Shown here: positions 1 through 18,673 of the stretch, piece after piece
Layout of the letters: every line of letters starts with the position of its first letter
Position numbering within the stretch: position 1 is the stretch's first letter
Assembly: GCA_965644315.1 (NCBI GenBank)
Contig: CBFFRQ010000154.1
Coordinates: 1-28,220 of the forward strand
Length of the DNA: 28,220 nt
Direction of reading: 5' to 3'
Source of the DNA: Caecitellus pseudoparvulus
Lineage: Eukaryota; Protista; Bigyra: Bicosoecida
Made by a program: the position numbers and the translations under genes
The notes under the pieces: generated by a model
The model's database searches: none
Told to the model about the DNA's origin: nothing
The model's input: the letters and a program-made list of their open reading frames with translations, nothing else

Positions 1-322
1 TAACCCTAACCCTAACCCTAACCCTAACCCTAACCCTAACCCTAACCCTAACCCTAACCCTAACCCTAACCCTAACCCTAACCCTAACCCTAACCCTAAC
101 CCTAACCCTAACCCTAACCCTAACCCTAACCCTAACCCTAACCCTAACCCTAACCCTAACCCTAACCCTAACCCTAACGCTAACCCTAACCCTAACCCTA
201 ACCCTAACCCTAACCCTAACCCTAACCCTAACCCTAACCCTAACCCTAACCCTAACCCTAACCCTAACCCTAACCCTAACCCTAACCCTAACCCTAACCC
301 TAACCCTAACCCTAACCCTAAC
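1..322 (+). repeat. Telomeric repeat tract (TAACCC)n = (TTAGGG)n on the minus strand, ~53 units
   Basis: Perfect hexamer array from the window start, with one variant unit CGCTAA at 178-183. Cannot tell whether it is the physical end or an internal tract with more elements beyond the window. Confidence 0.98.
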
Positions 323-542
323 TTTCCAAATGTCAACCTAATCATAGGTTGTGCATTGCTAACAATGCCTAATCCAGGCGCTCGTGCACCCAAGTGTGGT
401 GTTGCACAGCGCTAGTGCATTGCATTGGGTGCGCGGGTGAGCAGCAGTGCGATTTCCGCACGCCACGCTCCCCACGCAGTGCTAAGTGCGGCTCCGGCTG
501 GACGCTGCACCACTGCTTGCCCGAAACCATTGCTTCATCATC

Positions 543-3500
543 ATGTCATCCAAGGCCAGCCAAGTCCTCGGCGTGCTCTTCGCGGACAAGTGCCTGGAGC
601 AGCGTGTGTCAGGGCGGCCACGAACAGGCGTGCTGACTGACATGTCACGCCGAGGGGCAGCCCGGACTTTCCAGCTCGGTGGCATGGACATTGACTGCAC
701 GGATGGCCAAGATGCATCATTTTTCGTCCGCAAGTGGCTTGGCATCTTCGGAGATGAGCTGGAGGCCGAGTTTCCTGGAGCTGCTCCTGTGATGGTGCGC
801 GCTAATTCCGCGCTGAAACAATCCGCACCAGGGCAGACCATTCTCCTTGTCACGCTGCCGAGTGACGGTGAAGGCCCCGCCATTGCCAAGTCCCTGCGCG
901 TTGCTGCTGCTGTGCGAGAAGACTTCATCATCATGTTGAAGGGGGGCGGCTCTGTGGGCGTGGTGTACTCCAACACGCGGCAGTTCACGTCAGAGCGCGC
1001 CAGGGTCAGCGTGATCGCCCCTCCCTCTGTAGTGAAGGTTGCTCAAAAGATCTCTGAGGCAGCAACCAACATTGCCTGTGAGAGTGGGGATGTGTCCAAG
1101 ATCTTGAAGCTTGTCCATGCCCATGTCACCAACACTCACTCCATCGCCAAGCGTGCTCCAAAGCCTGTCGGACACTCCGTCTCTCCAGAAGATGACGCCT
1201 CTGTCGACAAGCTGCCAAGCACACTGCCAAAGCCCCTTGCTGAAGGCGGTCCCAAGAAGAAGAAGACACGGAGGGGCAAACGCAAGCCATCGACAAAGAG
1301 CTCTCCTCCTCGGCGCTTTGCTGAACTGTTCAAGGAGGGCGTCGTGACTACTCGCCCCACAGCGCCCTCCCCTCCATCTGCACCCGCCGAGTCGTCAGGC
1401 CAAGCTGCTCCTTCCCCTGAACATGTCCCTCTTCCGTCCACCAGAGTCAAGCGCCCGACCTTCAGCAGATGGGACTCGCCCAGCCCACGCAAGAGACCTC
1501 CTCCCGTGTCCCCGACAGCTGCGGCACTATCGGGCAGCGGGGCACAGCCACCTCTTGCAAGTCCTGCAAACACGGCACCCACTACGCTGCTAAAACTTGC
1601 TGACTGCAGTCGCCGACCAGCACGGCTTGGACAGGCAAACCTTGACTTGGGTTCCCCCTTGCAGCAACTCCTCGCCTCTGCGCACGCGTTCCGCAATAAG
1701 GACCAACGACACTGTGTCCAGGCCTGCTTTGAAACAGCAGCAGGAGAGCCACTCTTCAATGACGATGACCTTGTCCTTCTTCAACACGCAGCCACCATCC
1801 AAGCGGCGCAGACATCCTTCTGTGCTGTGTTGAAGAAGAGCAGCGCGCGTCACCCTGGCACACCAGACTCGGAGGTCCATGCTGTCTGTGAAACAGAACC
1901 TTCCATGCCGACCACCGAGCAAGACAAGCTTGACCTCTTTCAATCGTTCCTGTACCGACATGCGCCTGATGATGCAGCACTCACCAGTGCCTGTCCACCT
2001 GTGCTCCTCCCTGGTCTTCATCTCTTGCTCACGCGTATCAACGAGGGCCATCGGGAACTTGAAGGCGGCACAGTGTCTGGACACTGCCTGGTTGATGTCA
2101 AGGCAGAGAAAGAGATGACCTCCGAGGCAAAAGTCTTTGCTGGGGTGTACTTCGCGTTTGCTCTCAGCTTGGTTGACACTGGAGGTGTCTCCCACCTTCA
2201 GCTCATTGTCGTCAACGCTGAGAAGTCCACACTTGTACTGTGGAACCCTGACGAACCCTTCAAGAGCACCAACATTCCAATCGACGGCTGCCTGAACACA
2301 CTCGACTCGATGGGCATTGAGTCTGTGTACCGTGTCTCATCCTCCCCGCTGAGTGGCAAGCCGATTCCCTTCAAAGACAGAGTGCGGCTGGCCATGCTGT
2401 CCCTCAGGTCTGACTTTCCCCCACTCCCGTTCGTAGCTGAGGACGAGACTGTCTACCCAAAGACTCTCATCACTGGCAAGACAACACGGGTGTACCTCCC
2501 TGTAGGCCGCACCACGCGCCAACAAGCAGCTGCCGATGAGAGAGCCAAGACGGTTGACCCCATACTGTCACTCATCCCAACATCTGTACAAGTCGCCGAC
2601 CAGATCAGTAGCGATGCACCCCATACCCCTGTCGGCCGCGGAAGACACATGACACTCGCACTTGCTGCTTGGAATGTGCACGGCTCCTGCGGCCAGTGTG
2701 TCCACGATGTCGTCACCTGTGTCCAGTCTGTGTGCAGTGCGTCGTCCATGTTGGCACTCTGTGTCACAGAGCCTGGGGGGCACGGCCTGCTCGACACGGA
2801 AGTCATGGGCCTTGAATGCTTCCGCCCAAGCCCGCCTGATCGGCCTGTCGGGCGGAGTGAGGTTGCCTTGCTGCTTGATCGAAGACTCAATGGCTCAGTG
2901 ATCCCGGGCCTCGACGTTGATGGTCGCTGCATAATTGCTTGCTCGATCCCTGCAAGCCCACAACCCATCGCCATCATAGCCACGTACGTACCCAACTGGC
3001 ACTCTTGGCAGCGAAAGAAGCCAGTCGCTGATCCGGACACGAAGCTTCCGTACCGGCAAGAGGTTTGGCGGCAGCTTGAGTCTGCTGTTCAACAGCTCCG
3101 CCTCACCCACATGATTGTCATCATGGGTGACTTGAACACTCATCCAGGTGACGAAGGGGTAGGCACGTGGGGAGCAGATCACTGGGAGAACCGGACCGGC
3201 ATTCCCGAGCCCACTGAAGACATCCTGCAGATGCAGCTCCTCTGCGAGCAAGGCCCACTGATCCCAGCCGGACTTGGTGGCCTGCCAACGCACAGGTATG
3301 GTCGGGCTCTGGACCACATCCTGATGACTGAGGACCTCCACAGTATGTTGAGCAGACCACTGCACATCACAACAACGTTCTCCAGCGGGACGAAAAAGAG
3401 TGCCGCTCGACTAGTCCTCAGTGACCATCATCTTGTTGCAGCAGAAGTCCGAGTGAAGCCTGCCAAGCGAGTGTGGACATCATCCAAGAGCCCCCATGTA

Positions 3501-6500
3501 CAGGCGGTGCCACCCTGGTGGACCTCAGCGACAGAGGCTGGGCTGGCAGCGCAAGCGATGTTTCGAGGATCCCTCAGCTCGCGGGCCACCGCGCTCCAGA
3601 CAGGCAGCGCCGCCCCGAGCCTATCCTTTCTCAACGGTGCTATCGAAGCTGCGGCTATGGACACACATCGCAAGGCCAAGACCCCACGTGACCCTCTGCC
3701 CCAGCTGAAGATGGACATCAAGGCGGCCAGCGGGCTCAAGAAGTCCATGACTGCACGCGTGTCCAAGCTGCGGAAGACCATTGCCAAGCTGCACCGGAAG
3801 CTCGCACTTGCCACCGGTCGGCATCCTCAGCCAGACCACGCCCGTGCCATCCGAGAGGGAATCTCCATGGCCACTGAAGAGCTACACGCCACGCTTCAAT
3901 GCCGCAAGGATGCAATGCGGAAGTGCACGAGGCTTGTGAAGAAGAAGCGACATGTCACTCTGTCCAGGATCCGAGCACGCTTGAGGGAACTCGCTGTCAC
4001 GGATCCCTTCACTGCCCACCAACACATCAAGCGCCTGTCAGGTCGAGGTCGTCGAGCCCGTCGAGCTCCCATCAGGTCCGTGAAGTCCATGCAGGGAGTG
4101 CTCATCTCCTCCCCTGATCTGGTGAAGGAGGAGGTTGCCAAGCAGATGTCTGGCATCCTGAGTCACAACAAGCCCAGGCCAACATCGCTGAAGTACGGGC
4201 TGGCAAGGTTCCTTCCCTCAGCCCAAGAGTCCTTCACCCCGCCAGTGACATGGCTTCCCTCCAAGAAGCAAGTCAAAGTCCTCATGGGATCACTCAGCTT
4301 GCATCGACACCCAGGCTCTGGCAAGTTCCAATCAGAGCACATCAAGTATGCTGGGCCAGGCTTCCAAGACATCTACTCCCAAGCCGTCATCCAAGCGTTG
4401 CAACACGGCACCTGCCCGCCAGACTACCATGCAGGCATTGGGTCACTCATCCCCAAGAAGACGAGTGAAGCTGGGCGGCCTCGCACATACCGCTTGATTG
4501 TATGCCGCCCCCCTCCTGCGAAGCTCTTCTTCTCAGTGGCCGCTGCATGCCTGGAGTCCTGGATGCAAACATGGGTGTCGAAGGAGCAGGCTGGCTTCAC
4601 TCGACACCGCAACACGCATGAGCACATCTTGGCTCTCCAAGAGGTGATCAAGGGCCACCTGCGACAGTCAACAGCGCCAGTGCAAGTCCTGGTACTCTTC
4701 GTGGACTTCCGGGGAGCATTCGACTCTGTGAGCCACGCAGCCATCACAGAGATCCTTGAGGCTGCCTCCCTCCCTGCGCCACTCCTGGCCGTCATCAAGG
4801 AGTACATGTCCAAGGCGACGGTCTCCATCAACACGCGCCATGGTCTTTGTCGCCCCCTTCCTGTCAGCAATGGTGTCCCCCAAGGAGGAGCTCTGTCCCC
4901 CCTCCTCTTCAAGGTTGCGATAGATGTGCTGTCGCAAAGGCTCCACGAGATGCCCCTCCAAGGCATCCAGGGAGTGGGCATCCCAACACCAGCAGGCCAT
5001 GTCACCCACACCCTGTATGCAGACGACCTGGCCTGCATCGCAACGTCTGCCACGGCCTTGCACCGAATCTTCGTAGAGGTGAAGGCCATCGCTGCCCGGG
5101 TTGGCCTTGCCATCAACCCGTCGAAGTCCGGGGTCATGATCCTTGCCAACTCCGTGCGAGGCAGCCGGACACCAGTCAGTGAAAGGAAGAAGTTGGTGTG
5201 GCGCTCGGCTGCCCTCAAAGCGGGCAGCATGCTGAAGGTTGGCACCAAGTCCATCCAACGGGTGGCCGAGTACACCTACTTGGGTGTGCCGATGTCCGAA
5301 CATCCTGCCAAGACCCGTGCACTTACCCTGCAACAAGCTGGGCTTGCTTGCATCCAAGCCGGGTTCACTGCGGGCGCGCTGCTCAGTGCCACCTGGCTCG
5401 ATGTGCAGCAGCGGCACCTGGTTGGGTATGCCACTGTCACGTCAGCCGCCGACTACATGCTGTCCACCCAAGCCAACAGTTCCCTGCTTCCGCTGCGCGA
5501 TGTTGACCGCGGCGTCGCCCTCGCCTTGGACAGGACCCAAGTCGGCTCGCAGAGTGCACTCATGCGCCCCCACAGCTACGCCAAGCTGGCTCTATGCGGA
5601 GTCCTGCCTGCCCACATCCGCTCCACGCAACTGCGGACTGGGATGTTTGTCAAGGCTCTCCGGATGCTGCACTCGGACACCCCTCTTGCCCGAGCTCTGT
5701 GCCTGACCATCCCGCAGGCCCTTGACCTTATGCCTGCTTCGATGTCGACGACCTTCATCGTCGACACCATTGCTGATGGAGGTCGACTCCGGGCTGCCAG
5801 TGTCCCTGCTCCGTGGGCACTGCATGCCCTCTTGGACCTCTGGCTCATGGGCTGCATGCCAGACCTTGCACAGCTTCGGCTTGCATGTGCACCTGGCTCT
5901 GAGCATGCTGCCACAGCCCTTGCCCAAGTCCTTGCCGGACTTAAGACCACCCCGGGCCTCCACAGGTCTGCGGTGGTTGGGGTGGCTGCCAGCGAGACGT
6001 CGTCCATGGCCGAACCCCCGGCCTTCACGGCAGACACCCCCTGGGCCCTGCGTCGCCAAGTCCTCGCGTCGTATCTTCATGTAGCCCAGGCAGTGCCGAG
6101 TGCAGCTGCCCACTACACCACCGACAGCCGAATCCCCCAAGTGCAGAAGCCCAGGCCGTATCATCTTGGGCCTGGTGCGCAGCACTTCGTGTGGCTACAT
6201 CCACTGCCACACGGGGTGAACCCCCTCTTCTGGGTCTGTCCTGATGACAGGCCCACCAGAGTGATGGTCCATCACTTCCAGACCTTACAGCTTCTTCATG
6301 GGGGGGACAGTGCCACTCTGTACGAGTGCTGTCCGATTTGCGGACTCAACACCGATGTACAGCTGCACGTGCACATCCTGCTGCACTGCACCCACCACGA
6401 ACTCACCATGGCACGCCAACACACGATGACCAAGTTCAGAGAACTGGCCAACAGGTCAGCTGTGCCCGAGTCCGCGGCGGGCCAAGTGCAGTGCCTGCCC

Positions 6501-7109
6501 ATCCCCCCCAAGATCTGCCACGCCCTCCTTCGTGCCCCCGACCCAGAGCCGCGAAGCCTGCGGGACCTCGAGGTCCTCCACAGGCTCCTGCTCTGCGGGC
6601 AGTGGCCTCACCGGTGGGGGCTGGCCGACGAAGAGCAGCTTGTCTCTATGAAAGAGGCGGCTGTCCTCTCCCACCCCCACCTCGTCCACCGTGCTGGTCC
6701 TTGCCGTGTCCGTGCCCCAGCTGTATGGCAAGACATCCTGCGCAGCGCGGTTGAGTTCACAGCAAAGGCGTGGCGGGTCACAGTCACTTACATGTTGCGT
6801 ATGACCGATGCCCACCACCTTGCTGTCCAGAGGCATGCTGAGTACCTGTGGTGGGCAGTACATGGGCGCGGGGCGCCGCTGCCTGGCCGCACGCAGCCAG
6901 TGCGGTCAGCGGCCACGCGGCACACGCGCAGGCCCCGCACTCGCCGCAGGGCACGCACCTTTTTCCCTGCCAAGGCTGGCCAAGTGCCGTCCACGGAGGG
7001 CAAGGTCCAGAGGACGCTGCAGCACTTCATGGGGCCTCAGCCAGCCCATGCAGACACTGATGGTGAGGGGGAAGGGCCCGATGGTTCCTGTGAAGAGAGC
7101 GAGGAGTAA
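543..7109 (+). CDS. Retrotransposon polyprotein (~2188 aa): N-terminal module, APE endonuclease, reverse transcriptase, CCHC zinc finger
   Basis: The ORF track starts at GTG 486; the first ATG (543, MSSKASQVLGVLF) aligns with the partner's MNAQVDQVLGVLF. APE motifs: WNVHG (2670), VTE, YVP, GDLN, LDHI, SDH (3420). RT motifs: IPKK, YRLI, QAGF, DFRGAFDSV, GVPQGGALSPLLF, YADD (5016-5027), INPSKS, YLG. CPIC-x10-H-x4-C at 6330-6389. Confidence 0.95.
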   Translation: MSSKASQVLGVLFADKCLEQRVSGRPRTGVLTDMSRRGAARTFQLGGMDIDCTDGQDASFFVRKWLGIFGDELEAEFPGAAPVMVRANSALKQSAPGQTILLVTLPSDGEGPAIAKSLRVAAAVREDFIIMLKGGGSVGVVYSNTRQFTSERARVSVIAPPSVVKVAQKISEAATNIACESGDVSKILKLVHAHVTNTHSIAKRAPKPVGHSVSPEDDASVDKLPSTLPKPLAEGGPKKKKTRRGKRKPSTKSSPPRRFAELFKEGVVTTRPTAPSPPSAPAESSGQAAPSPEHVPLPSTRVKRPTFSRWDSPSPRKRPPPVSPTAAALSGSGAQPPLASPANTAPTTLLKLADCSRRPARLGQANLDLGSPLQQLLASAHAFRNKDQRHCVQACFETAAGEPLFNDDDLVLLQHAATIQAAQTSFCAVLKKSSARHPGTPDSEVHAVCETEPSMPTTEQDKLDLFQSFLYRHAPDDAALTSACPPVLLPGLHLLLTRINEGHRELEGGTVSGHCLVDVKAEKEMTSEAKVFAGVYFAFALSLVDTGGVSHLQLIVVNAEKSTLVLWNPDEPFKSTNIPIDGCLNTLDSMGIESVYRVSSSPLSGKPIPFKDRVRLAMLSLRSDFPPLPFVAEDETVYPKTLITGKTTRVYLPVGRTTRQQAAADERAKTVDPILSLIPTSVQVADQISSDAPHTPVGRGRHMTLALAAWNVHGSCGQCVHDVVTCVQSVCSASSMLALCVTEPGGHGLLDTEVMGLECFRPSPPDRPVGRSEVALLLDRRLNGSVIPGLDVDGRCIIACSIPASPQPIAIIATYVPNWHSWQRKKPVADPDTKLPYRQEVWRQLESAVQQLRLTHMIVIMGDLNTHPGDEGVGTWGADHWENRTGIPEPTEDILQMQLLCEQGPLIPAGLGGLPTHRYGRALDHILMTEDLHSMLSRPLHITTTFSSGTKKSAARLVLSDHHLVAAEVRVKPAKRVWTSSKSPHVQAVPPWWTSATEAGLAAQAMFRGSLSSRATALQTGSAAPSLSFLNGAIEAAAMDTHRKAKTPRDPLPQLKMDIKAASGLKKSMTARVSKLRKTIAKLHRKLALATGRHPQPDHARAIREGISMATEELHATLQCRKDAMRKCTRLVKKKRHVTLSRIRARLRELAVTDPFTAHQHIKRLSGRGRRARRAPIRSVKSMQGVLISSPDLVKEEVAKQMSGILSHNKPRPTSLKYGLARFLPSAQESFTPPVTWLPSKKQVKVLMGSLSLHRHPGSGKFQSEHIKYAGPGFQDIYSQAVIQALQHGTCPPDYHAGIGSLIPKKTSEAGRPRTYRLIVCRPPPAKLFFSVAAACLESWMQTWVSKEQAGFTRHRNTHEHILALQEVIKGHLRQSTAPVQVLVLFVDFRGAFDSVSHAAITEILEAASLPAPLLAVIKEYMSKATVSINTRHGLCRPLPVSNGVPQGGALSPLLFKVAIDVLSQRLHEMPLQGIQGVGIPTPAGHVTHTLYADDLACIATSATALHRIFVEVKAIAARVGLAINPSKSGVMILANSVRGSRTPVSERKKLVWRSAALKAGSMLKVGTKSIQRVAEYTYLGVPMSEHPAKTRALTLQQAGLACIQAGFTAGALLSATWLDVQQRHLVGYATVTSAADYMLSTQANSSLLPLRDVDRGVALALDRTQVGSQSALMRPHSYAKLALCGVLPAHIRSTQLRTGMFVKALRMLHSDTPLARALCLTIPQALDLMPASMSTTFIVDTIADGGRLRAASVPAPWALHALLDLWLMGCMPDLAQLRLACAPGSEHAATALAQVLAGLKTTPGLHRSAVVGVAASETSSMAEPPAFTADTPWALRRQVLASYLHVAQAVPSAAAHYTTDSRIPQVQKPRPYHLGPGAQHFVWLHPLPHGVNPLFWVCPDDRPTRVMVHHFQTLQLLHGGDSATLYECCPICGLNTDVQLHVHILLHCTHHELTMARQHTMTKFRELANRSAVPESAAGQVQCLPIPPKICHALLRAPDPEPRSLRDLEVLHRLLLCGQWPHRWGLADEEQLVSMKEAAVLSHPHLVHRAGPCRVRAPAVWQDILRSAVEFTAKAWRVTVTYMLRMTDAHHLAVQRHAEYLWWAVHGRGAPLPGRTQPVRSAATRHTRRPRTRRRARTFFPAKAGQVPSTEGKVQRTLQHFMGPQPAHADTDGEGEGPDGSCEESEE

Positions 7110-7930
7110 GGCGGAACGCAGGCGTGCGGGCGGGGAGTGGAACAGCCACGCTTGTGGCCGCGTCTACCCTCCACGAGTGTCCTGACGTGATGAACCTGTG
7201 TGAAGCGTGGTGATAACCACGGTAGCCCGAAGCAGATGCCCAAGACCTTACCTTTTACTTACTACATAGCCTGCGAGTAGCAGTGGAGTGAGCGGGAGCG
7301 TGCCTCGGGCCGCGGCGCGTGTGCAGCCGCAGTGCTGCACGGCCGCGGCCCGGATGGCGGCTGACGATGAAGCAAGCTCACTCACCACGAAACCAGGGCG
7401 TGACGGGTTGAAGAAGAAGGTCCTTTTCCTTTCTGTATCCCCCTTGATGCGCGCGATGCGCTCTGTGGCGCGGGCGCGTGTGTGCGCACGGGTGCTGGTG
7501 TGCGCGATCGAATTCCGCACCACGCACCCGGCCGAGTTCCCGCGCAGAGGCGGAGCACACACCTCATGAAGGGCGCAGAGAGGCCTATGAGGGCCACAGA
7601 GGAGGTGGGTGAGGAATTTGGATTATGATCTGTTGTCAAGACTGCGCGGATGCCTGGGTGTGCTCTGGTGTGCCCCAGGTGTCTGGCGCTGGCGGAGCAA
7701 GGGATGAAGTGTAGCGGAGGAGGGCCAAGATGATGAATTGGAGCGGGCAGGGACCTGCCCTAGCAAGTGGCGGCAGATATAACGGGTGCAAGCCTGTGTT
7801 TGTTGCGAATCCGCGCCAAGCGGTAGCCGCTGTGGCGTCCTACATGTGCAGAGGTGCATTGTGGGGCGCCCGTGTGACGCTCAAGCTGTACGGTGCCAAG
7901 CTGTGCCGAGGTGAAATGCATTGTGAGTTG
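7110..7930 (+). other. ~820-nt structured 3' UTR of the autonomous element, no poly(A)
   Basis: Non-coding, repeated at 17244-18064; GC-rich hairpins at 7306-7352 and ~7461-7549; runs directly into CTAACC repeats. Confidence 0.8.
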
Positions 7931-8001
7931 CTAACCCTAACCCTAACCCTAACCCTAACCCTAACCCTAACCCTAACCCTAACCCTAACCCTAACCCTAA
8001 C
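7931..8001 (+). repeat. Interstitial telomeric spacer, ~12 CTAACC units
   Basis: Perfect repeats between the 3' end of copy 1 and the 5' end of the partner. Confidence 0.97.
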
Positions 8002-8224
8002 TTTCCAAATGTCAAGCTAATCACAAGTTGTGAAGTGCTAACATTGCCTAATCCAGGCGCTCGTGCACCCAAGTGTGGTGTTGCACAGTGCTTGCTGGTT
8101 GGGTGGTGCGCACCGGGGCGGGGTAGTGCGAATTCCGCACACCATCGCACCGTGGCTCCCAGTTTGCGCCCTCGGTCGGGGCATGCACCTGGGATCGACA
8201 TCAAAAGCATCATTGACAAGCATC

Positions 8225-10309
8225 ATGAACGCCCAAGTGGATCAAGTCCTGGGGGTCCTCTTCGTGGAGGGGTGCCTGAAGCGCAAGCAAGTGCTCGGCC
8301 CCAGAACAGGTGTCTTCACTGACATGCCACGTCGGGGTGCCGCACGCACCTTCGAGCTTGGAGGACCCCTGCCCAAGACTGATCATGATAGTTCATCTTC
8401 GGCACGGGACATGTGGCTCGAGGTCTATGGGGAAGCCGCCGAACGGCTGATCCCAGGGCTGAGTGCGGAATTCGGCAACGCCAATGCGGCCCTGCGCCAG
8501 GGACCCACCGGATCGCCAACCATCCTCGTCACGCTCGGAAGTGAGGGTGATTCACCAACAGTGGCACGTCAACTTCGCATTCTTGCTGCTCAAGAGGACG
8601 ACTTCGCCATTCGAGTCGGCCAAGGTGGGTTCGTCGCCGTGGCCTACACCAACACCAAGCAGTTCGCATCGGCGAAGGCGAAAGTGAAGGTGAAGGCCCA
8701 CCCCACCGCCATCCAAGTGGCCCACCAAGTGACCAAGGAAGCAACCGAAATCGCCTGCCAGTCAGGTGATGTTGCCAAGGTCATGTGCCTCGTTAGGTCC
8801 CACTTCGACCATGGCCCCGTGCCAGCCCAAGCCGTCCGTCCCAGTGTCAGACAATCCGTCCCCTCCGAGGGTGATGCACCTGTCGACACCAAGACACCAT
8901 CGACCTGGACTGACACTCAGCTCGACAAGGCACCGAAGAAGAAGAAGACCCGTCGAGGCAAGCGAGGAAAGGGCAAGTCAGCCGGACGATCCCTCACCTT
9001 CGAGGACGTCTTCATCAAGAACGTCCGGCCACCTGCACCTCGACCAACCTCACCACCTGCCACCCAAGGCTCACCCAAAGATACCGTCACCACCCCTGTG
9101 GTGCATGCCATGTTGCCTTCATCAAGGGTGCAGCGGGGCGTCGACCGCAAGTGGCCGTCCCCCACCCCGTCGGGCGAGGCAAGCCCCGAGGTGCACCGGT
9201 ATCGGCCGTCTGCAGCAGCAGCATGGGAGGTGATCACAAGGGTGGTGCCTCTTCATGACAGTGTGCGGACACCCGAGCACCTGGCCGAGTACCCCATCAA
9301 GCCTGGCCCTCTGGCCGACCTGCTGTCATCGACCCACGTGTACTCTAACGTGGGGGGGCGGGCCTGTGTCCAGGCCTGTCTCGAGACGGCAGCAGGGGAG
9401 AGGGTCTTCGAGGCTGGGGACCTCCTCCTACTCCAGCATGCAGCCACCATCAACGCTGCCCAGCTTGCCTTCAAGCACATGGTCAGGCAGCTGGAGGGGG
9501 TGGTCAGTGACTCGTCCAGCTCGGACATCATGGACGTCGGCCAGAAGCCACCCTCCCCCTTCCGCTCAGACGGGCAACGGGTGGCCGTCTTCCGCAACAT
9601 GCTGCACCAGCACTCGCCGGATGACACCTTCCTGGCCCCAGGTACACCACCAGTCCTGCTTCCCGGCCTGCACCTGCTCATCGACCGCATCAACCAAGGG
9701 TACCGTGCCCCAGCCGGGCATGATGACCTTGGCCAGGCCGGCGTCGACCCCAGCCAGGTTGATGAAGAGGGTGACCAAGAGGGGCACCTCGACGGAGTGC
9801 TGTATGCCTTCGCACTTCGAGAGGTGTGGACCGACAACACGGCCCATCTGCAGCTCATCCTCGTCGACCATGATCGAGGCAAGCTGGTGCTGTGGAACCC
9901 CGACATCCCTGACCTCCATGACGAGCTGCCCCTGCACAAGTGCATGACCCGGCTGGCAGCCGAAGGCATCAACGTCTTGTACCGGATCTGGACCACACCC
10001 GAGGCGGGCAGTCCAGCACCCTTCCGGGACAGGCTTCGAGGGGCACTCCAGTCTCTCCGAGATGACTTCCCCCCCCTGCCTCACAAGGCCACCGACGGCA
10101 CCGTGCACCCCCAGACCCTCATCGCTGGCAAGGGCACAAGGGTGGCCATGCCTCATGGGCGGATGACCCGACAGCAGGCCGCCACCCTGGAGGCTGAGGT
10201 CAAGGACCCCCTCAAGCGGCTGGTGCCTGAAGACGGCGAGGGTCGCCTGCCCAAGGTCAAGGATGTGCCCCACATCTCGATCGGGCAGATGGGTGGACGC
10301 CTGATGTAA
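8225..10309 (+). CDS. ~694-aa stand-alone homologue of the polyprotein N-terminal module (ORF1/Gag-analogue with putative cysteine-protease domain)
   Basis: Collinear shared blocks: QVLGVLF, PRTGV, RRGAARTF, PKKKKTRRGKR, CVQAC(F/L)ETAAGE, LLQHAATI, PPVLLPGLHLL, HLQLI, LVLWNPD, DFPPLP, TRQQAA. 29/47 identity over the first 47 aa. An alternative in-frame ATG lies at 8183. Confidence 0.9.
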   Translation: MNAQVDQVLGVLFVEGCLKRKQVLGPRTGVFTDMPRRGAARTFELGGPLPKTDHDSSSSARDMWLEVYGEAAERLIPGLSAEFGNANAALRQGPTGSPTILVTLGSEGDSPTVARQLRILAAQEDDFAIRVGQGGFVAVAYTNTKQFASAKAKVKVKAHPTAIQVAHQVTKEATEIACQSGDVAKVMCLVRSHFDHGPVPAQAVRPSVRQSVPSEGDAPVDTKTPSTWTDTQLDKAPKKKKTRRGKRGKGKSAGRSLTFEDVFIKNVRPPAPRPTSPPATQGSPKDTVTTPVVHAMLPSSRVQRGVDRKWPSPTPSGEASPEVHRYRPSAAAAWEVITRVVPLHDSVRTPEHLAEYPIKPGPLADLLSSTHVYSNVGGRACVQACLETAAGERVFEAGDLLLLQHAATINAAQLAFKHMVRQLEGVVSDSSSSDIMDVGQKPPSPFRSDGQRVAVFRNMLHQHSPDDTFLAPGTPPVLLPGLHLLIDRINQGYRAPAGHDDLGQAGVDPSQVDEEGDQEGHLDGVLYAFALREVWTDNTAHLQLILVDHDRGKLVLWNPDIPDLHDELPLHKCMTRLAAEGINVLYRIWTTPEAGSPAPFRDRLRGALQSLRDDFPPLPHKATDGTVHPQTLIAGKGTRVAMPHGRMTRQQAATLEAEVKDPLKRLVPEDGEGRLPKVKDVPHISIGQMGGRLM

Positions 10310-10640
10310 GTCACCTGTGGGGGCATACTCCCTGTGCCACACATGACTGAAGCTTTGTGTCGCGACCGACGCACATAGCTGACATCGGACATTGGAAAGT
10401 CCAACCCAACCTCACCATCACCAACCCAACATCGATACCAACACATCAGGACTCGGCTCAGTGGAAGGGGAAGGCACTTGCAGCAAGATCTGTGAGGCCG
10501 CCCCCAAACCTGAGCCGAAGGGACAGCCGGGCTGGGTCGTGTGCTTGCATCTCAGCAACACCCAGTCCGTGTCGAGTCCATATCCTCCAGCCCACACCGC
10601 CACCCAAGCCAAGCAAGTCGGGTCTCCACCCCTGGACATC

Positions 10641-10702
10641 GGACCGAGACGGACGAGACTGGACTGGACGGACAAGACAAGAGTGGACCGAGACCTGGAC
10701 CT
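10641..10702 (+). repeat. Imperfect GGAC/AGAC microrepeat in the partner 3' UTR
   Basis: ggaccgagac ggacgagact ggactggacg gacaagacaa gagtggaccg agacctggac. Confidence 0.6.
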
Positions 10703-10924
10703 ACACCTCAAGACCATCCCACCGGGGCGGGCGCTGAAGCGCCAAGACAGACGGCGACTTATACAACGGACACGAGTCTGTGCTAGTCGCAAAGCCGTGC
10801 AAGCGGTGCCGTCGTGGTGTCTGTGTCACTGCATTCTGTTGTGGCGCAGGTGGCACCACATGTCCAAGCCCAAGCTGTACCATGATGTAGCCTGCATGGA
10901 GGCAATCTGCAATGCATTGAGTAG

Positions 10925-10934
10925 CTAACCTAAA
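10925..10934 (+). repeat. Minimal variant telomeric linker CTAACCTAAA
   Basis: Lies between the partner 3' end and the first base of copy 2 that matches copy 1. Confidence 0.75.
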
Positions 10935-13900
10935 CGCTAATTCCGCGCTGAAACAATCCGCACCAGGGCAGACCATTCTCCTTGTCACGCTGCCGAGTGA
11001 CGGTGAAGGCCCCGCCATTGCCAAGTCCCTGCGCGTTGCTGCTGCTGTGCGAGAAGACTTCATCATCATGTTGAAGGGGGGCGGCTCTGTGGGCGTGGTG
11101 TACTCCAACACGCGGCAGTTCACGTCAGAGCGCGCCAGGGTCAGCGTGATCGCCCCTCCCTCTGTAGTGAAGGTTGCTCAAAAGATCTCTGAGGCAGCAA
11201 CCAACATTGCCTGTGAGAGTGGGGATGTGTCCAAGATCTTGAAGCTTGTCCATGCCCATGTCACCAACACTCACTCCATCGCCAAGCGTGCTCCAAAGCC
11301 TGTCGGACACTCCGTCTCTCCAGAAGATGACGCCTCTGTCGACAAGCTGCCAAGCACACTGCCAAAGCCCCTTGCTGAAGGCGGTCCCAAGAAGAAGAAG
11401 ACACGGAGGGGCAAACGCAAGCCATCGACAAAGAGCTCTCCTCCTCGGCGCTTTGCTGAACTGTTCAAGGAGGGCGTCGTGACTACTCGCCCCACAGCGC
11501 CCTCCCCTCCATCTGCACCCGCCGAGTCGTCAGGCCAAGCTGCTCCTTCCCCTGAACATGTCCCTCTTCCGTCCACCAGAGTCAAGCGCCCGACCTTCAG
11601 CAGATGGGACTCGCCCAGCCCACGCAAGAGACCTCCTCCCGTGTCCCCGACAGCTGCGGCACTATCGGGCAGCGGGGCACAGCCACCTCTTGCAAGTCCT
11701 GCAAACACGGCACCCACTACGCTGCTAAAACTTGCTGACTGCAGTCGCCGACCAGCACGGCTTGGACAGGCAAACCTTGACTTGGGTTCCCCCTTGCAGC
11801 AACTCCTCGCCTCTGCGCACGCGTTCCGCAATAAGGACCAACGACACTGTGTCCAGGCCTGCTTTGAAACAGCAGCAGGAGAGCCACTCTTCAATGACGA
11901 TGACCTTGTCCTTCTTCAACACGCAGCCACCATCCAAGCGGCGCAGACATCCTTCTGTGCTGTGTTGAAGAAGAGCAGCGCGCGTCACCCTGGCACACCA
12001 GACTCGGAGGTCCATGCTGTCTGTGAAACAGAACCTTCCATGCCGACCACCGAGCAAGACAAGCTTGACCTCTTTCAATCGTTCCTGTACCGACATGCGC
12101 CTGATGATGCAGCACTCACCAGTGCCTGTCCACCTGTGCTCCTCCCTGGTCTTCATCTCTTGCTCACGCGTATCAACGAGGGCCATCGGGAACTTAAAGG
12201 CGGCACAGTGTCTGGACACTGCCTGGTTGATGTCAAGGCAGAGAAAGAGATGACCTCCGAGGCAAAAGTCTTTGCTGGGGTGTACTTCGCGTTTGCTCTC
12301 AGCTTGGTTGACACTGGAGGTGTCTCCCACCTTCAGCTCATTGTCGTCAACGCTGAGAAGTCCACACTTGTACTGTGGAACCCTGACGAACCCTTCAAGA
12401 GCACCAACATTCCAATCGACGGCTGCCTGAACACACTCGACTCGATGGGCATTGAGTCTGTGTACCGTGTCTCATCCTCCCCGCTGAGTGGCAAGCCGAT
12501 TCCCTTCAAAGACAGAGTGCGGCTGGCCATGCTGTCCCTCAGGTCTGACTTTCCCCCACTCCCGTTCGTAGCTGAGGACGAGACTGTCTACCCAAAGACT
12601 CTCATCACTGGCAAGACAACACGGGTGTACCTCCCTGTAGGCCGCACCACGCGCCAACAAGCAGCTGCCGATGAGAGAGCCAAGACGGTTGACCCCATAC
12701 TGTCACTCATCCCAACATCTGTACAAGTCGCCGACCAGATCAGTAGCGATGCACCCCATACCCCTGTCGGCCGCGGAAGACACATGACACTCGCACTTGC
12801 TGCTTGGAATGTGCACGGCTCCTGCGGCCAGTGTGTCCACGATGTCGTCACCTGTGTCCAGTCTGTGTGCAGTGCGTCGTCCATGTTGGCACTCTGTGTC
12901 ACAGAGCCTGGGGGGCACGGCCTGCTCGACACGGAAGTCATGGGCCTTGAATGCTTCCGCCCAAGCCCGCCTGATCGGCCTGTCGGGCGGAGTGAGGTTG
13001 CCTTGCTGCTTGATCGAAGACTCAATGGCTCAGTGATCCCGGGCCTCGACGTTGATGGTCGCTGCATAATTGCTTGCTCGATCCCTGCAAGCCCACAACC
13101 CATCGCCATCATAGCCACGTACGTACCCAACTGGCACTCTTGGCAGCGAAAGAAGCCAGTCGCTGATCCGGACACGAAGCTTCCGTACCGGCAAGAGGTT
13201 TGGCGGCAGCTTGAGTCTGCTGTTCAACAGCTCCGCCTCACCCACATGATTGTCATCATGGGTGACTTGAACACTCATCCAGGTGACGAAGGGGTAGGCA
13301 CGTGGGGAGCAGATCACTGGGAGAACCGGACCGGCATTCCCGAGCCCACTGAAGACATCCTGCAGATGCAGCTCCTCTGCGAGCAAGGCCCACTGATCCC
13401 AGCCGGACTTGGTGGCCTGCCAACGCACAGGTATGGTCGGGCTCTGGACCACATCCTGATGACTGAGGACCTCCACAGTATGTTGAGCAGACCACTGCAC
13501 ATCACAACAACGTTCTCCAGCGGGACGAAAAAGAGTGCCGCTCGACTAGTCCTCAGTGACCATCATCTTGTTGCAGCAGAAGTCCGAGTGAAGCCTGCCA
13601 AGCGAGTGTGGACATCATCCAAGAGCCCCCATGTACAGGCGGTGCCACCCTGGTGGACCTCAGCGACAGAGGCTGGGCTGGCAGCGCAAGCGATGTTTCG
13701 AGGATCCCTCAGCTCGCGGGCCACCGCGCTCCAGACAGGCAGCGCCGCCCCGAGCCTATCCTTTCTCAACGGTGCTATCGAAGCTGCGGCTATGGACACA
13801 CATCGCAAGGCCAAGACCCCACGTGACCCTCTGCCCCAGCTGAAGATGGACATCAAGGCGGCCAGCGGGCTCAAGAAGTCCATGACTGCACGCGTGTCCA

Positions 13901-16900
13901 AGCTGCGGAAGACCATTGCCAAGCTGCACCGGAAGCTCGCACTTGCCACCGGTCGGCATCCTCAGCCAGACCACGCCCGTGCCATCCGAGAGGGAATCTC
14001 CATGGCCACTGAAGAGCTACACGCCACGCTTCAATGCCGCAAGGATGCAATGCGGAAGTGCACGAGGCTTGTGAAGAAGAAGCGACATGTCACTCTGTCC
14101 AGGATCCGAGCACGCTTGAGGGAACTCGCTGTCACGGATCCCTTCACTGCCCACCAACACATCAAGCGCCTGTCAGGTCGAGGTCGTCGAGCCCGTCGAG
14201 CTCCCATCAGGTCCGTGAAGTCCATGCAGGAAGTGCTCATCTCCTCCCCTGATCTGGTGAAGGAGGAGGTTGCCAAGCAGATGTCTGGCATCCTGAGTCA
14301 CAACAAGCCCAGGCCAACATCGCTGAAGTACGGGCTGGCAAGGTTCCTTCCCTCAGCCCAAGAGTCCTTCACCCCGCCAGTGACATGGCTTCCCTCCAAG
14401 AAGCAAGTCAAAGTCCTCATGGCATCACTCAGTCTACACCGTCACCCAGGCTCTGGCAAGTTCCAGTCAGAGCACATCAAGTATGCTGGGCCAGGCTTCC
14501 AAGACATCTACTCCCAAGCCGTCATCCAAGCGTTGCAACAAGGCACCTGCCCGCCAGACTACCATGCAGGCATTGGGTCACTCATCCCCAAGAAGACGAG
14601 TGAAGCTGGGCGGCCTCGCACATACCGCTTGATTGTATGCCGCCCCCCTCCTGCGAAGCTCTTCTTCTCAGTGGCCGCTGCATGCCTGGAGTCCTGGATG
14701 CAAACATGGGTGTCGAAGGAGCAGGCTGGCTTCACTCGACACCGCAACACGCATGAGCACATCTTGGCTCTCCAAGAGGTGATCAAGGGCCACCTGCGAC
14801 AGTCAACAGCGCCAGTGCAAGTCCTGGTACTCTTCGTGGACTTCCGGGGAGCATTCGACTCTGTGAGCCACGCAGCCATCACAGAGATCCTTGAGGCTGC
14901 CTCCCTCCCTGCGCCACTCCTGGCCGTCATCAAGGAGTACATGTCCAAGGCGACGGTCTCCATCAACACGCGCCATGGTCTTTGTCGCCCCCTTCCTGTC
15001 AGCAATGGTGTCCCCCAAGGAGGAGCTCTGTCCCCCCTCCTCTTCAAGGTTGCGATAGATGTGCTGTCGCAAAGGCTCCACGAGATGCCCCTCCAAGGCA
15101 TCCAGGGGGTTGGCATCCCAACACCAGCAGGCCATGTCACCCACACCCTGTATGCAGACGACCTGGCCTGCATCGCAACGTCTGCCACGGCCTTGCACCG
15201 AATCTTCGTAGAGGTGAAGGCCATCGCTGCCCGGGTTGGCCTTGCCATCAACCCGTCGAAGTCCGGGGTCATGATCCTTGCCAACTCCGTGCGAGGCAGC
15301 CGGACACCAGTCAGTGAAAGGAAGAAGTTGGTGTGGCGCTCGGCTGCCCTCAAAGCGGGCAGCATGCTGAAGGTTGGCACCAAGTCCATCCAACGGGTGG
15401 CCGAGTACACCTACTTGGGTGTGCCGATGTCCGAACATCCTGCCAAGACCCGTGCACTTACCCTGCAACAAGCTGGGCTTGCTTGCATCCAAGCCGGGTT
15501 CACTGCGGGCGCGCTGCTCAGTGCCACCTGGCTCGATGTGCAGCAGCGGCACCTGGTTGGGTATGCCACTGTCACGTCAGCCGCCGACTACATGCTGTCC
15601 ACCCAAGCCAACAGTTCCCTGCTTCCGCTGCGCGATGTTGACCGCGGCGTCGCCCTCGCCTTGGACAGGACCCAAGTCGGCTCGCAGAGTGCACTCATGC
15701 GCCCCCACAGCTACGCCAAGCTGGCTCTATGCGGAGTCCTGCCTGCCCACATCCGCTCCACGCAACTGCGGACTGGGATGTTTGTCAAGGCTCTCCGGAT
15801 GCTGCACTCGGACACCCCTCTTGCCCGAGCTCTGTGCCTGACCATCCCGCAGGCCCTTGACCTTATGCCTGCTTCGATGTCGACGACCTTCATCGTCGAC
15901 ACCATCGCTGATGGGGGTCGGCTTCGAGCTGCCAGTGTCCCTGCTCCGTGGGCACTGCATGCCCTCTTGGACCTCTGGCTCATGGGCTGCATGCCAGACC
16001 TTGCACAGCTTCGGCTTGCATGTGCACCTGGCTCTGAGCATGCTGCCACAGCCCTTGCCCAAGTCCTTGCCGGACTTAAGACCACCCCGGGCCTCCACAG
16101 GTCTGCGGTGGTTGGGGTGGCTGCCAGCGAGACGTCGTCCATGGCCGAACCCCCGGCCTTCACGGCAGACACCCCCTGGGCCCTGCGTCGCCAAGTCCTC
16201 GCGTCGTATCTTCATGTAGCCCAGGCAGTGCCGAGTGCAGCTGCCCACTACACCACCGACAGCCGAATCCCCCAAGTGCAGAAGCCCAGGCCGTATCATC
16301 TTGGGCCTGGTGCGCAGCACTTCGTGTGGCTACATCCACTGCCACACGGGGTGAACCCCCTCTTCTGGGTCTGTCCTGATGACAGGCCCACCAGAGTGAT
16401 GGTCCATCACTTCCAGACCTTACAGCTTCTTCATGGGGGGGACAGTGCCACTCTGTACGAGTGCTGTCCGATTTGCGGACTCAACACCGATGTACAGCTG
16501 CACGTGCACATCCTGCTGCACTGCACCCACCACGAACTCACCATGGCACGCCAACACACGATGACCAAGTTCAGAGAACTGGCCAACAGGTCAGCTGTGC
16601 CCGAGTCCGCGGCGGGCCAAGTGCAGTGCCTGCCCATCCCCCCAAGATCTGCCACGCCCTCCTTCGTGCCCCCGACCCAGAGCCGCGAAGCCTGCGGGAC
16701 CTCGAGGTCCTCCACAGGCTCCTGCTCTGCGGGCAGTGGCCTCACCGGTGGGGGCTGGCCGACGAAGAGCAGCTTGTCTCTATGAAAGAGGCGGCTGTCC
16801 TCTCCCACCCCCACCTCGTCCACCGTGCTGGTCCTTGCCGTGTCCGTGCCCCAGCTGTATGGCAAGACATCCTGCGCAGCGCGGTTGAGTTCACAGCAAA

Positions 16901-18064
16901 GGCGTGGCGGGTCACAGTCACTTACATGTTGCGTATGACCGATGCCCACCACCTTGCTGTCCAGAGGCATGCTGAGTACCTGTGGTGGGCAGTACATGGG
17001 CGCGGGGCGCCGCTGCCTGGCCGCACGCAGCCAGTGCGGTCAGCGGCCACGCGGCACACGCGCAGGCCCCGCACTCGCCGCAGGGCACGCACCTTTTTCC
17101 CTGCCAAGGCTGGCCAAGTGCCGTCCACGGAGGGCAAGGTCCAGAGGACGCTGCAGCACTTCATGGGGCCTCAGCCAGCCCATGCAGACACTGATGGTGA
17201 GGGGGAAGGGCCCGATGGTTCCTGTGAAGAGAGCGAGGAGTAAGGCGGAACGCAGGCGTGCGGGCGGGGAGTGGAACAGCCACGCTTATGGCCGCGTCTA
17301 CCCTCCACGAGTGTCCTGACGTGATGAACCTGTGTGAAGCGTGGTGATAACCACGGTAGCCCGAAGCAGATGCCCAAGACCTTACCTTTTACTTACTACA
17401 TAGCCTGCGAGTAGCAGTGGAGTGAGCGGGAGCGTGCCTCGGGCCGCGGCGCGTGTGCAGCCGCAGTGCTGCACGGCCGCGGCCCGGATGGCGGCTGACG
17501 ATGAAGCAAGCTCACTCACCACGAAACCAGGGCGTGACGGGTTGAAGAAGAAGGTCCTTTTCCTTTCTGTATCCCCCTTGATGCGCGCGATGCGCTCTGT
17601 GGCGCGGGCGCGTGTGTGCGCACGGGTGCTGGTGTGCGCGATCGAATTCCGCACCACGCACCCGGCCGAGTTCCCGCGCAGAGGCGGAGCACACACCTCA
17701 TGAAGGGCGCAGAGAGGCCTATGAGGGCCACAGAGGAGGTGGGTGAGGAATTTGGATTATGATCTGTTGTCAAGACTGCGCGGATGCCTGGGTGTGCTCT
17801 GGTGTGCCCCAGGTGTCTGGCGCTGGCGGAGCAAGGGATGAAGTGTAGCGGAGGAGGGCCAAGATGATGAATTGGAGCGGGCAGGGACCTGCCCTAGCAA
17901 GTGGCGGCAGATATAACGGGTGCAAGCCTGTGTTTGTTGCGAATCCGCGCCAAGCGGTAGCCGCTGTGGCGTCCTACATGTGCAGAGGTGCATTGTGGGG
18001 CGCCCGTGTGACGCTCAAGCTGTACGGTGCCAAGCTGTGCCGAGGTGAAATGCATTGTGAGTTG
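10935..18064 (+). mobile_element. 5'-truncated autonomous element, copy 2
   Basis: Near-identical to 800-7930 (offset 10135, then 10134 after a 1-bp deletion); lacks the 5' UTR and first ~86 codons. Confidence 0.96.
10936..17243 (+). pseudogene. Truncated and frameshifted polyprotein ORF of copy 2
   Basis: Native start is missing. The C7 run of copy 1 (6503-6509) is C6 at 16638-16643, giving a premature stop at 16785; the remaining C-terminus continues in another frame to 17243. The indel may be a homopolymer sequencing error. Confidence 0.8.
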
Positions 18065-18078
18065 CTAACCTAACCCTA
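18065..18078 (+). repeat. Innermost telomeric remnant CTAACCTAACCCTA
   Basis: About two units between copy 2 and unique subtelomeric DNA; the first unit lacks one C. Confidence 0.85.
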
Positions 18079-18278
18079 TTTATAGTAATTAGAAGGGATT
18101 ATTTATAACTTTATCATATGGATTTAATAATATTACGCTATCGCATAATATCATTAACTGTTTTGATTATATATCTAAAAATATAAATTCTGATATAAAT
18201 AAATATATATTAATATATTGTATGCGGGGTATGTATTCATAGAGTCTATAGCTGATTAGTAGATATATATATATTTAT
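18079..18278. other. Sharply AT-rich ~200-bp island at the array/subtelomere boundary
   Basis: Almost all A/T with (TA)n runs, in contrast to GC-rich DNA on both sides; no ORF. Confidence 0.85.
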
Positions 18279-18673
18279 GTCTGCTTCTGAGTCCGTGTTA
18301 GCCGCAAGTTGCGATAGCAATCTGAGGCACGGCAGCTCATACATTTATGTATGCGGTCCCCCCAGTGTCGTAACGCGCGGCGGGGCCGTTTTGGGTCGCG
18401 GGGTGGCGCGGTGTGCGCGGGGTCGCCGCGGCGCCCCCAACACGCCAAGGCCGAAACCCGCGCCCAACTCGCCCAACAGGCGCCGAACGCCTGAATGACG
18501 ACGAAGAACATTAAAGTACCATGTTCCTGATGGAACATGCTCATTTCACACGGTGACTCACCATGTTTCGTGCAAGATATGTGCGCGACGCAAGCGAGAA
18601 CCGTGGCCCGCTTCTTTCGAGGAGCAAGTGTGAGGTGAGTGTGGTGAAAACAAGAGGCTACAATGCAATATTC

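Follow-up and report, generated by a model that had tools for sequence, protein, structure and literature searches.

Introduction

Retrotransposons specific for telomeres have been described in only a few lineages, namely insects, some fungi, Giardia, Chlorella and rotifers, and they are central to the debate on how telomerase and retroelements are related. Here we describe a head-to-tail array of three elements, designated A, B and C, at one end of the 28,220-nucleotide (nt) contig CBFFRQ010000154.1 (the window, taken at its full length) from the bicosoecid protist Caecitellus pseudoparvulus (assembly GCA_965644315.1). The array very probably belongs to a lineage of long interspersed nuclear elements (LINEs) that is specific for telomere repeats and carries an endonuclease of the apurinic/apyrimidinic type (APE), in which several autonomous families and an abundant partner devoid of reverse transcriptase (RT) coexist with telomerase. 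It would constitute a further, apparently independent case, the host being a GC-rich protist that has canonical telomeres of TTAGGG as well as a gene for the telomerase reverse transcriptase (TERT). It is unusually informative because defined 5' and 3' cis elements are common to several coexisting autonomous families and to an RT-less partner that is dominant, because the partner protein is demonstrably under selection, and because the junctions record both repeat-primed and repeat-free events.

Among the described systems, the TRAS and SART elements of Bombyx mori (R1 clade) are also APE-type LINEs found only in telomerase-made repeats and in one fixed orientation; in TRAS the sense strand lies on the C-rich strand, as it does here, and telomerase-type repeats coexist with the elements in both cases. 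TRAS and SART differ in having two open reading frames (ORFs), the first of which encodes a zinc-knuckle Gag-like protein, as well as a poly(A) tail, a TTAGG target and an R1-clade affiliation, whereas the elements described here have a single ORF, of 2188 amino acids (aa) in A, with an RNA recognition motif (RRM)-like and a probable peptidase domain, end in GCTAA without poly(A), target TTAGGG and have an RT that tentatively groups with L1-type elements. The structures of the TRAS1 and R1Bm endonucleases have been solved and are in the PDB; neither was among the PDB sequence matches of the present APE at E-values up to 10.

The HeT-A, TART and TAHRE elements of Drosophila (Jockey clade) form comparable head-to-tail arrays at chromosome ends with their 3' ends proximal, and HeT-A provides the precedent for an abundant partner without an RT, whose coding capacity is limited to the N-terminal (Gag-like) protein and which relies on an autonomous relative. 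Some junctions in our material lack telomere repeats, as the end-addition used by these elements predicts. In Drosophila, however, telomerase and its repeats are absent, and the elements have poly(A) and a Gag with zinc knuckles, whereas here TERT is present and TTAGGG tracts of 0-102 or more units lie between elements. The match between B and HeT-A is functional only, since the domains of B differ from those of Drosophila Gag. With that reservation, the HeT-A/TAHRE-like partnership beside telomerase-type repeats that an initial annotation of the window had proposed agrees with an RT-less partner with common cis signals, a TERT gene and CCCTAA tracts.

MoTeR1 and MoTeR2 of Magnaporthe and FoTeR of Fusarium likewise insert into TTAGGG tracts in a fixed orientation in hosts that possess telomerase, and they too combine a long RT-encoding element with a short one that has the same termini. 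They carry a C-terminal restriction-like endonuclease (CCHC, then RHD...E...R/KPD...D/E) and no APE (PMC12857005). The elements described here have instead an N-terminal APE, and no RHD/KPD follows their CCHC motif. With L1-type LINEs they have in common an APE matching PF03372, a C-terminal CxxC...H...C motif and an RT that tentatively falls in a clade with plant L1-type elements, and the RRM of L1 ORF1p is the best domain-covering, though weak, structural match of their first domain. The RT-less element B also parallels HAL1, the ORF1-only 'half-L1' derivative. They depart from L1 in that the ORF1 and ORF2 equivalents are fused in one frame, a probable papain-fold peptidase is added, insertion is telomere-specific and poly(A) is lacking; Pfam gave no L1 ORF1p or zf-RVT match in the family protein. 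The defining features of TRAS/SART, HeT-A/TART and MoTeR/FoTeR are thus each missing in part, in keeping with the early view that the system fits none of the known types.

Organisation of the array

The window opens with a terminal telomere tract, (CCCTAA)n, at 1-321 (+ strand), which contains 52 perfect units and one CGCTAA variant at 178-183. It is followed by the full-length autonomous element A (322-7934, +; 7613 nt, boundaries read from the sequence), an internal tract of 11 CCCTAA units that separates A from B (7935-8000, +), the non-autonomous partner B (8001-10928, +; 2928 nt), a CCTAAA filler corresponding to one imperfect telomeric unit (10929-10934, +), the 5'-truncated copy of A termed C (10935-18068, +), and residual telomeric units, CCTAACCCTA, proximal to C (18069-18078, +). 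None of the CCCTAA tracts at 1-321 and 7935-8000 is expected by chance. Reading of the sequence and a self-comparison of positions 1-18200 confirmed the head-to-tail array of A, B and C at the chromosome end, all on the + strand. In this comparison, 10935-18078 was 99.7% identical to 800-7945, and 7931-8364 showed 75% similarity to 252-682, indicating that A and B have their 5' ends in common. Since the three ORFs lie on the strand that reads CCCTAA, the 5' ends of the elements point to the chromosome end, and the boundaries and ORF strands thereby support the orientation given in the initial annotation. Its statement that all junctions are telomeric holds for telomere/A (~53 units) and A/B (11 units), and only minimally for B/C (the imperfect CCTAAA) and for C/proximal DNA (~1.7 units). 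Its placement of the array end at 18078 was mistaken, as a repeat (18079-18360) and a fragment of a further telomeric LINE (18361-18667) come next. Poly(A) is absent from A, B and C, each of which terminates in AATGCA-N12-14-GCTAA. The CGCTAA variant at 178-183 was considered as a minimal element footprint and rejected, given that variant units elsewhere are diverse and CGCTAA was found only once; an ordinary variant, or else an error, is the probable explanation.

Element A consists of a 5' untranslated region (UTR; 322-542), the ORF (543-7109, 2188 aa) and a 3' UTR (7110-7934) with the terminal GCTAA. The encoded protein comprises, in this order, the RRM-like domain (weakly assigned), a basic motif, a probable papain-fold cysteine peptidase, the APE, the RT and a CCHC motif. 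Pfam recognised RVT_1 (2.9e-29, residues 1303-1582), which corresponds to the RT core at 4449-5288 (+) with YADD at 5016-5027, and Exo_endo_phos (2.3e-5), the latter over the C-terminal half only of the APE at 2655-3467 (+). The APE motifs WN, (T/S)EPGG, Y-x-P, GD-x-N-x-H, D and SDH were invariant in an alignment of nine family members. In sequence searches of the PDB the RT matched R2Bm (1e-16) and human L1 ORF2p (6e-12), and ExoIII was the sole endonuclease matched by the APE (E 0.014, with E-values up to 10 considered). Having a non-LTR (LTR, long terminal repeat) RT and intact N-terminal APE motifs, A is an APE-type non-LTR retrotransposon (LINE), and its first description as a single-ORF APE-RT element is borne out. 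The C-terminal CCHC motif (CPxC...H...C; 6330-6389, +) lies in a region with no Pfam match at relaxed thresholds, and no conserved RHD/KPD of a restriction-like endonuclease follows it in the nine-sequence alignment. A second endonuclease of this kind, as in Dualen, was sought past the RT and not found, only CxxC...H...C being conserved there.

Element C begins at position 800 of A and has the 3' end in common with it, a LINE-like 5' truncation. The two copies differ by 18 substitutions and by a 1-nt deletion in a C7 run of C (A position ~6503), which causes a frameshift and may stem from misassembly of the homopolymer. Within the ORF there are 17 substitutions, 13 synonymous and 4 non-synonymous. 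The substitutions cluster in two patches, 4288-4331 and 5771-5792, and this patchiness suggests gene conversion.

Distribution in the genome

When the whole assembly (30.6 Mb in 215 contigs) was searched, the 15-nt 5' terminus was found 70 times (reversed control, 1+1), and all 70 occurrences lay at 12.2 kb or less from a contig end with the 5' end toward that end. The 3' terminus pattern occurred 127 times (control, 0); among the matches listed with a determined end distance, these termini were within ~30 kb of an end and in the same polarity. The contig ends themselves bear telomere tracts of ~260 nt to 2.5 kb. Apart from a few possible exceptions given below, the copies are end-restricted and in a single orientation, so that functionally they are telomere-specific retrotransposons; the mapping of termini agrees with the expectation that all copies would be telomeric and of one polarity.

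A search with the RT protein returned 96 matches falling into groups at ~100, 69, 59-61 and 36-37% identity, which indicates at least four autonomous families at the chromosome ends. In place of the two-component system first proposed there are thus at least four autonomous families plus B. The most divergent of these, family D, has an RT 36-37% identical to that of A. A 307-nt unit, of which at least 25 copies close to full length lie near contig ends in end-outward polarity, follows the RT core of family D downstream at an unvarying distance of ~1.58 kb in 7/7 contigs, and from this spacing we take it to be the 3' end of family D. Family D ORFs reach up to ~3400 aa elsewhere in the assembly (open frame at C147). 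The initial annotation had raised the matter of a TERT gene beside these elements; one is present, identified by a Telomerase_RBD match of 79 bits within a 1389-aa open frame.

The RT-less partner B

The ORF of B (8225-10309, 694 aa) corresponds to the N-terminal module alone: its product aligns end to end with residues 1-703 of A (41% identity, E 8e-143) and stops where the APE begins, as had been anticipated for a partner encoding only that module. Thirteen N-terminal modules could be aligned, with ~70 invariant positions, and B keeps all of them; its candidate catalytic triad is Cys381 (9365), His541 (9845) and Asn558 (9896). Protein identity between B and any autonomous N-terminal module is at most 41-48%, which marks B as an old lineage. 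Both its termini, 5' and 3', are the same as those of the autonomous families. The B copies are 99.8-100% identical to each other and show varied 5' truncations (at 1436, 1448, 1529, 1990, 2243, 2480 and 2596), and the 3' tail proper to B (…GAGTAGCTAA) is the commonest among the 3' termini listed.

A protein search revealed an intact B ortholog of 694 aa, 97% identical, on the metagenome contig L054, in which telomere units, B, two further units and the 5' end of another family member follow one another. The two ORFs show 60 nt differences and 20 aa differences. The ratio of non-synonymous to synonymous substitution rates (dN/dS) is 0.165 for the whole ORF, the peptidase domain having a value of 0.08, and a binomial test (22 or fewer replacement changes among 60, against a neutral expectation of 0.72) gave P ~1e-8. 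The B ORF is under purifying selection.

Terminal sequences and junctions

All families have a conserved 5' terminus, located in A at 322-410 (+) and starting with CTTTCCAAATGTCAA. Its first ~90 nt are near-invariant though the family proteins are only 40-50% identical, and the remaining 5' UTR diverges. Three telomere-like motifs, CTAA(C/T), are found within this terminus. In the ~60% family, some elements (L016, L026, L028 and L030) begin at TGTCAACC, 9 nt inside the usual CTTTCCAAA start, and these TGTCAACC starts directly adjoin telomere units or the 3' end of another element; they may represent either a second site of initiation or a 9-nt truncation that recurs.

At the other terminus, the last ~125 nt (7810-7934 in A, +) contain two hairpins followed by AATGCA-N12-14-GCTAA, and this structure is common to A, B and five other family representatives. 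Pairing extends to 94% of the alignment cells, and compensatory changes occur in 13 pairs, against 4.7+-1.5 in shuffles (0/500); sliding the partners as a control lowered the compensatory pairs to 1-3. An Rfam scan of the window gave no match. By analogy with other LINEs, hairpins of this kind are a signal through which the RT could recognise the RNA of its own element as well as that of a partner depending on it, and we infer roles for the 5' terminus and for AATGCA.

The junctions were compared over 51 sampled loci, which yielded ~40 different junctions on the 3' side and 22 on the 5' side. The 3' end encoded by the elements is exactly GCTAA, after which 0 to 102 perfect CCCTAA units were counted in the ~40 distinct 3' junctions. 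When only a few units are left, the first of them often lacks one C (GCTAA-CCTAA), as in both proximal junctions of the window, and more generally the register varies, GCTAA being followed by CC-, CCC-, CCCC- or CCCCC-TAA. Tandems of B read GCTAA|CTTTCC with an exact 2928-nt spacing in at least 6 contigs, and at some other junctions GCTAA is fused straight to internal points of 5'-truncated neighbours. From these sequences it appears that reverse transcription can start at GCTAA with or without a telomeric primer. At the 5' side, CCCTAA|CTTTCC was found in 14/22 distinct contexts, and the rest have 1-10 extra or variant bases. Moreover, micro-insertions of element 3' tails, 13-27 nt long, occur inside long CCCTAA tracts (L044, L047; C125, C145). 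One 15-nt A-rich insert, AAAAGAAAAAAAAAC, was also seen in these telomere tracts.

The N-terminal module

The module that precedes the APE in A, and that makes up the whole B protein, had been described as unfamiliar. It has indeed no Pfam match, yet in predicted structures it resolves into a weakly assigned RRM-like domain and a papain-fold peptidase. AlphaFold models were built from small family alignments and gave a predicted local distance difference test (pLDDT) score of 74 for domain 1, and a pLDDT of 73 with a predicted template modelling (pTM) score of 0.73 for domain 2.

For domain 1 (645-975, +; residues ~35-143), the best domain-covering match was the RRM of human L1 ORF1p (Z 6.2, 91 residues aligned). 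In a wide search of all representative PDB chains the same RRM scored Z 5.0 and an unrelated 60-residue helical match 5.8; generic RRMs ranked after L1 ORF1p (Z 3.5-4.9). No Pfam match was obtained for this domain, relaxed thresholds included, nor any match to the L1 ORF1p family. The matches are at most suggestive of an RRM-like fold. Domains 1 and 2 are separated by a proline-rich linker and by the invariant basic motif KKKTRRGKR (1257-1283, +), which A and B both have.

Domain 2 (1656-2378, +) is predicted to be a cysteine peptidase of the papain fold, Josephin/C39-like. An invariant Cys in CVQAC, an invariant His in HLQL and an invariant Asn in WNPD, the last two 17 residues apart, provide a candidate triad that in A is Cys391 (1713), His551 (2193) and Asn568 (2244). 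In the domain model, Cys47 opens the helix 47-56, His207 precedes the strand 208-214 and Asn224 follows the strand 219-223, so that the modelled Cys is at a helix N-terminus with His and Asn on adjacent strands, the papain arrangement. The top Foldseek match was the Josephin domain of ataxin-3 (E 3e-3). On VIA re-alignment Josephin reached Z 7.5 over 166/182 residues and the C39 domains of PCAT1 and ComA Z ~7, papain-fold peptidases or close relatives accounting for 24/25 top structure rows; an ESM Atlas search returned C39, Josephin, calpain and USP clusters. No Pfam match to a peptidase family was found in eight family members at E up to 10, and a language-model feature search yielded C58/C39 candidates only below threshold. 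As all Z values for domain 2 are below 8, the papain-fold assignment is probable rather than certain. Directly upstream of the APE, the alignment showed the boundary motif P-x-T-P-[VI]-G-[RK] (2619-2639, +), a candidate self-processing site. The in-frame fusion of an ORF1-like RNA-binding domain and a papain-fold peptidase to the APE-RT would be an unusual LINE architecture, and it offers a testable route to an ORF1-like protein from a single ORF.

Relatives and placement of the RT

The metagenome contig L031 (7707 nt) carries a complete autonomous element with CCCTAA on both sides. It was considered as an independent distant lineage and rejected as such, since it is 97% identical at the nt level to the C114 subfamily, which points to the same or a sister organism. 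For the autonomous pair L031/L043 the overall dN/dS was 0.17, with values of 0.04 for the APE and 0.05 for the RT. A profile-free exhaustive search of 1.84 billion representative proteins returned only seven at E <= 1e-30, and outside those seven the identity of the RT core was 24-33%. Two more distant relatives, P0006 and P0007, were inspected in their genomic contexts. The contig of P0006 has no telomere units. P0007 (3724 aa, 34% identity over APE-RT) is on the 18758-nt Logan contig L053, which begins with three CCCTAA units; the P0007 ORF lies 7.5 kb inside, with a DDE transposase gene between. This context hints that the wider clade may be end-associated in other organisms too.

In a FastTree phylogeny of 141 RT cores, the four local families together with P0006 and P0007 formed one clade with a Shimodaira-Hasegawa (SH)-like support of 100, nested in a clade of 25 rows (support 95) in which the members bearing a name are L1-type elements of plants, with PF03372 and zf-RVT. 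Elsewhere in the tree, most of the high-scoring matches sampled have PF14529. The RT forms a clade of its own and would be L1-like rather than R1, Jockey or CRE; this placement is tentative, because the tree is unrooted, its sampling is biased to the matches of the query itself and it holds no labelled clade references. The idea of an independent origin is favoured by a clade lying beside L1-type elements, and it shares the tentative character of that placement. No description of this family was found in open-access papers and bioRxiv preprints.

Proposed mechanism and alternative explanations

According to the model we favour, the element RNA would span CTTTCC... to ...GCUAA, and the RT would recognise the 3' hairpins and begin exactly at the terminal CUAA. 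The primer would be a G-strand 3'-OH ending in ...TTAG(G)(G), provided either by an APE nick in duplex TTAGGG (by our estimate in ~55-60% of events) or by a natural or eroded chromosome end. The cDNA would then extend outward, which would fix the polarity; priming on the G-strand would in this way explain why polarity is strict. The CCCTAA abutting the 5' end would come from telomerase or from a pre-existing distal tract. Element B would supply an ORF1-like protein of its own (RNA binding plus peptidase) and borrow the APE-RT in trans, by analogy with HeT-A and its relatives TART and TAHRE and with half-L1. More speculatively, the peptidase probably frees the N-terminal module from the polyprotein at the P-x-T-P-V-G-R/K boundary. 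The GCTAA end without poly(A) makes for a simple model that ties RT priming to the telomeric G-strand. The strong constraint on the APE speaks for the use of nicking of telomeric duplex, and the repeat-free junctions speak for the use of free or eroded ends, or of template jumps of the RT, as well.

Several observations weigh against this interpretation. A strictly repeat-specific nick would not predict the zero-repeat junctions. A few D units that are ~80% identical (80-83% at C89:60985-61283 (+), C89:73172-73470 (-) and C30:253739-254027 (-)) are internal, tens of kb inside C89, or in opposite polarity. An RT fragment of 168 aa with 69% identity (G000:C23:10663-11166 (-)), 10.6 kb from the contig start, is in opposite polarity too; it may be an interstitial or inverted relic. 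The tally of 3' termini rests on 100 of the 127 matches, those listed, with minus-strand matches covered in part. Several ends have the same junction contexts, and subtelomeric duplication therefore accounts for some of the copies. As regards the N-terminal module, the RRM-like assignment is weak, being outranked by the 60-residue helical match in the wide search, and the structural matches are middling (Z 5-7.5) with no Pfam match beside them. Finally, transcript ends, activity and correctness of the assembly are deduced from DNA.

Pure end-addition as in Drosophila, in which the RNA is copied onto a free G-strand 3' end and telomerase re-caps the product with no endonucleolytic insertion, is possible, if doubtful. 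It accounts for the zero-repeat junctions (the GCTAA|CTTTCC tandems of B and GCTAA joined to truncated neighbours), for the variable register from CC- to CCCCC-TAA, as ends with variable overhangs predict, and for the 13-27 nt micro-insertions of 3' tails in telomere tracts, and the dominant 5' phase CCCTAA|CTTTCC fits telomerase extension from a fixed cDNA end. However, no part of the protein is under stronger constraint than the APE (dN/dS 0.04), and the APE motifs are invariant at ~35% family identity, which is hard to explain if nicking is unused, and template jumping by the RT also yields zero-repeat junctions. TART and TAHRE likewise retain an APE. A more far-reaching possibility, which we deem unlikely, is a dual system of end maintenance in which element RNAs are copied onto eroded, repeat-less ends and telomerase or capping proteins are then seeded by the conserved ~90 nt of the 5' terminus, in which TTAGG-like motifs abound. 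It would explain the repeat-free junctions and the micro-insertions, and, if true, the elements would be part of normal end maintenance and a living intermediate between telomerase-only and Drosophila-type telomeres.

The remaining explanations question retrotransposition itself, the partner or the assembly. That the arrays arose mainly by subtelomeric recombination and duplication of a few old insertions, the restriction to ends then reflecting survival of copies and not integration, seems quite improbable to us. The recurrence of the same junction contexts at several contig ends, with many loci collapsing to one context, the exact 2928-nt spacing of B-B units in at least 6 contigs and the patchy A/C differences suggestive of gene conversion all speak for some contribution of this kind. 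They have to be set against ~40 distinct 3' junctions with 0-102 repeats, many truncation points and micro-insertions, and against a polarity that is strict at all sampled ends; besides, copies 99.8-100% identical together with purifying selection on the APE, the RT and the B ORF point to recent, protein-dependent retrotransposition. It is still harder to see B as a recent internal-deletion derivative of an autonomous element whose protein has no role of its own, as might be thought from its ending exactly at the module boundary and from both termini being common to the autonomous elements: an identity of at most 41-48%, the retention of every invariant residue of the module and the low dN/dS (0.165) against an ortholog from another sample, with a binomial P of ~1e-8, make this highly improbable. 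The least credible possibility, which can practically be dismissed, is an assembly artefact with repeats stitched to a contig end. The sole frameshift of C does fall in a homopolymer run, but dozens of contig ends show the same architecture, there are 19 differences between A and C, which are thus distinct copies, and two independently assembled, telomere-bounded metagenome contigs, L031 (autonomous) and L054 (B), agree with the window, which argues against misassembly. On balance we retain insertion by a telomere-repeat-specific LINE lineage and its partner as the preferred reading.

Sequences proximal to the array

Immediately inside the residual telomeric units, positions 18079-18360 (+) are occupied by a 282-nt AT-rich repeat of which other chromosome ends carry copies (C88:242309-242592, C89:894029-894256, and one that is split in C68). 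It may be an end-associated element or a boundary sequence. Elsewhere, other AT-rich sequences adjoin the innermost telomere units (L036, L043, L045). The repeat is followed by the 307-nt 3' terminal fragment of a family-D LINE (18361-18667, +), in the same orientation as A, B and C, which stops at CAATGCA and then continues into a degenerate TAACCTAA.

Another D unit was found in an unusual context at locus L051 (C201:1-9897, reverse strand ~930-1900), where a telomere tract, CCTAA and ~700 nt of unrelated sequence lead to a D 3' unit of ~270 nt. There the D unit is fused to the 5' UTR of an element of the 69% family that misses its first ~60-65 nt, a chimeric end that suggests template switching or recombination.

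Next to the array lies a host gene for a Sel1-repeat protein of 1876 aa (18674-24304, -; stop codon at 18674). Its 32 Sel1 repeats derive from 108-bp tandem units that are 70-90% identical. Beyond it, an ankyrin-repeat gene is encoded on the same strand (25905-27188, -).

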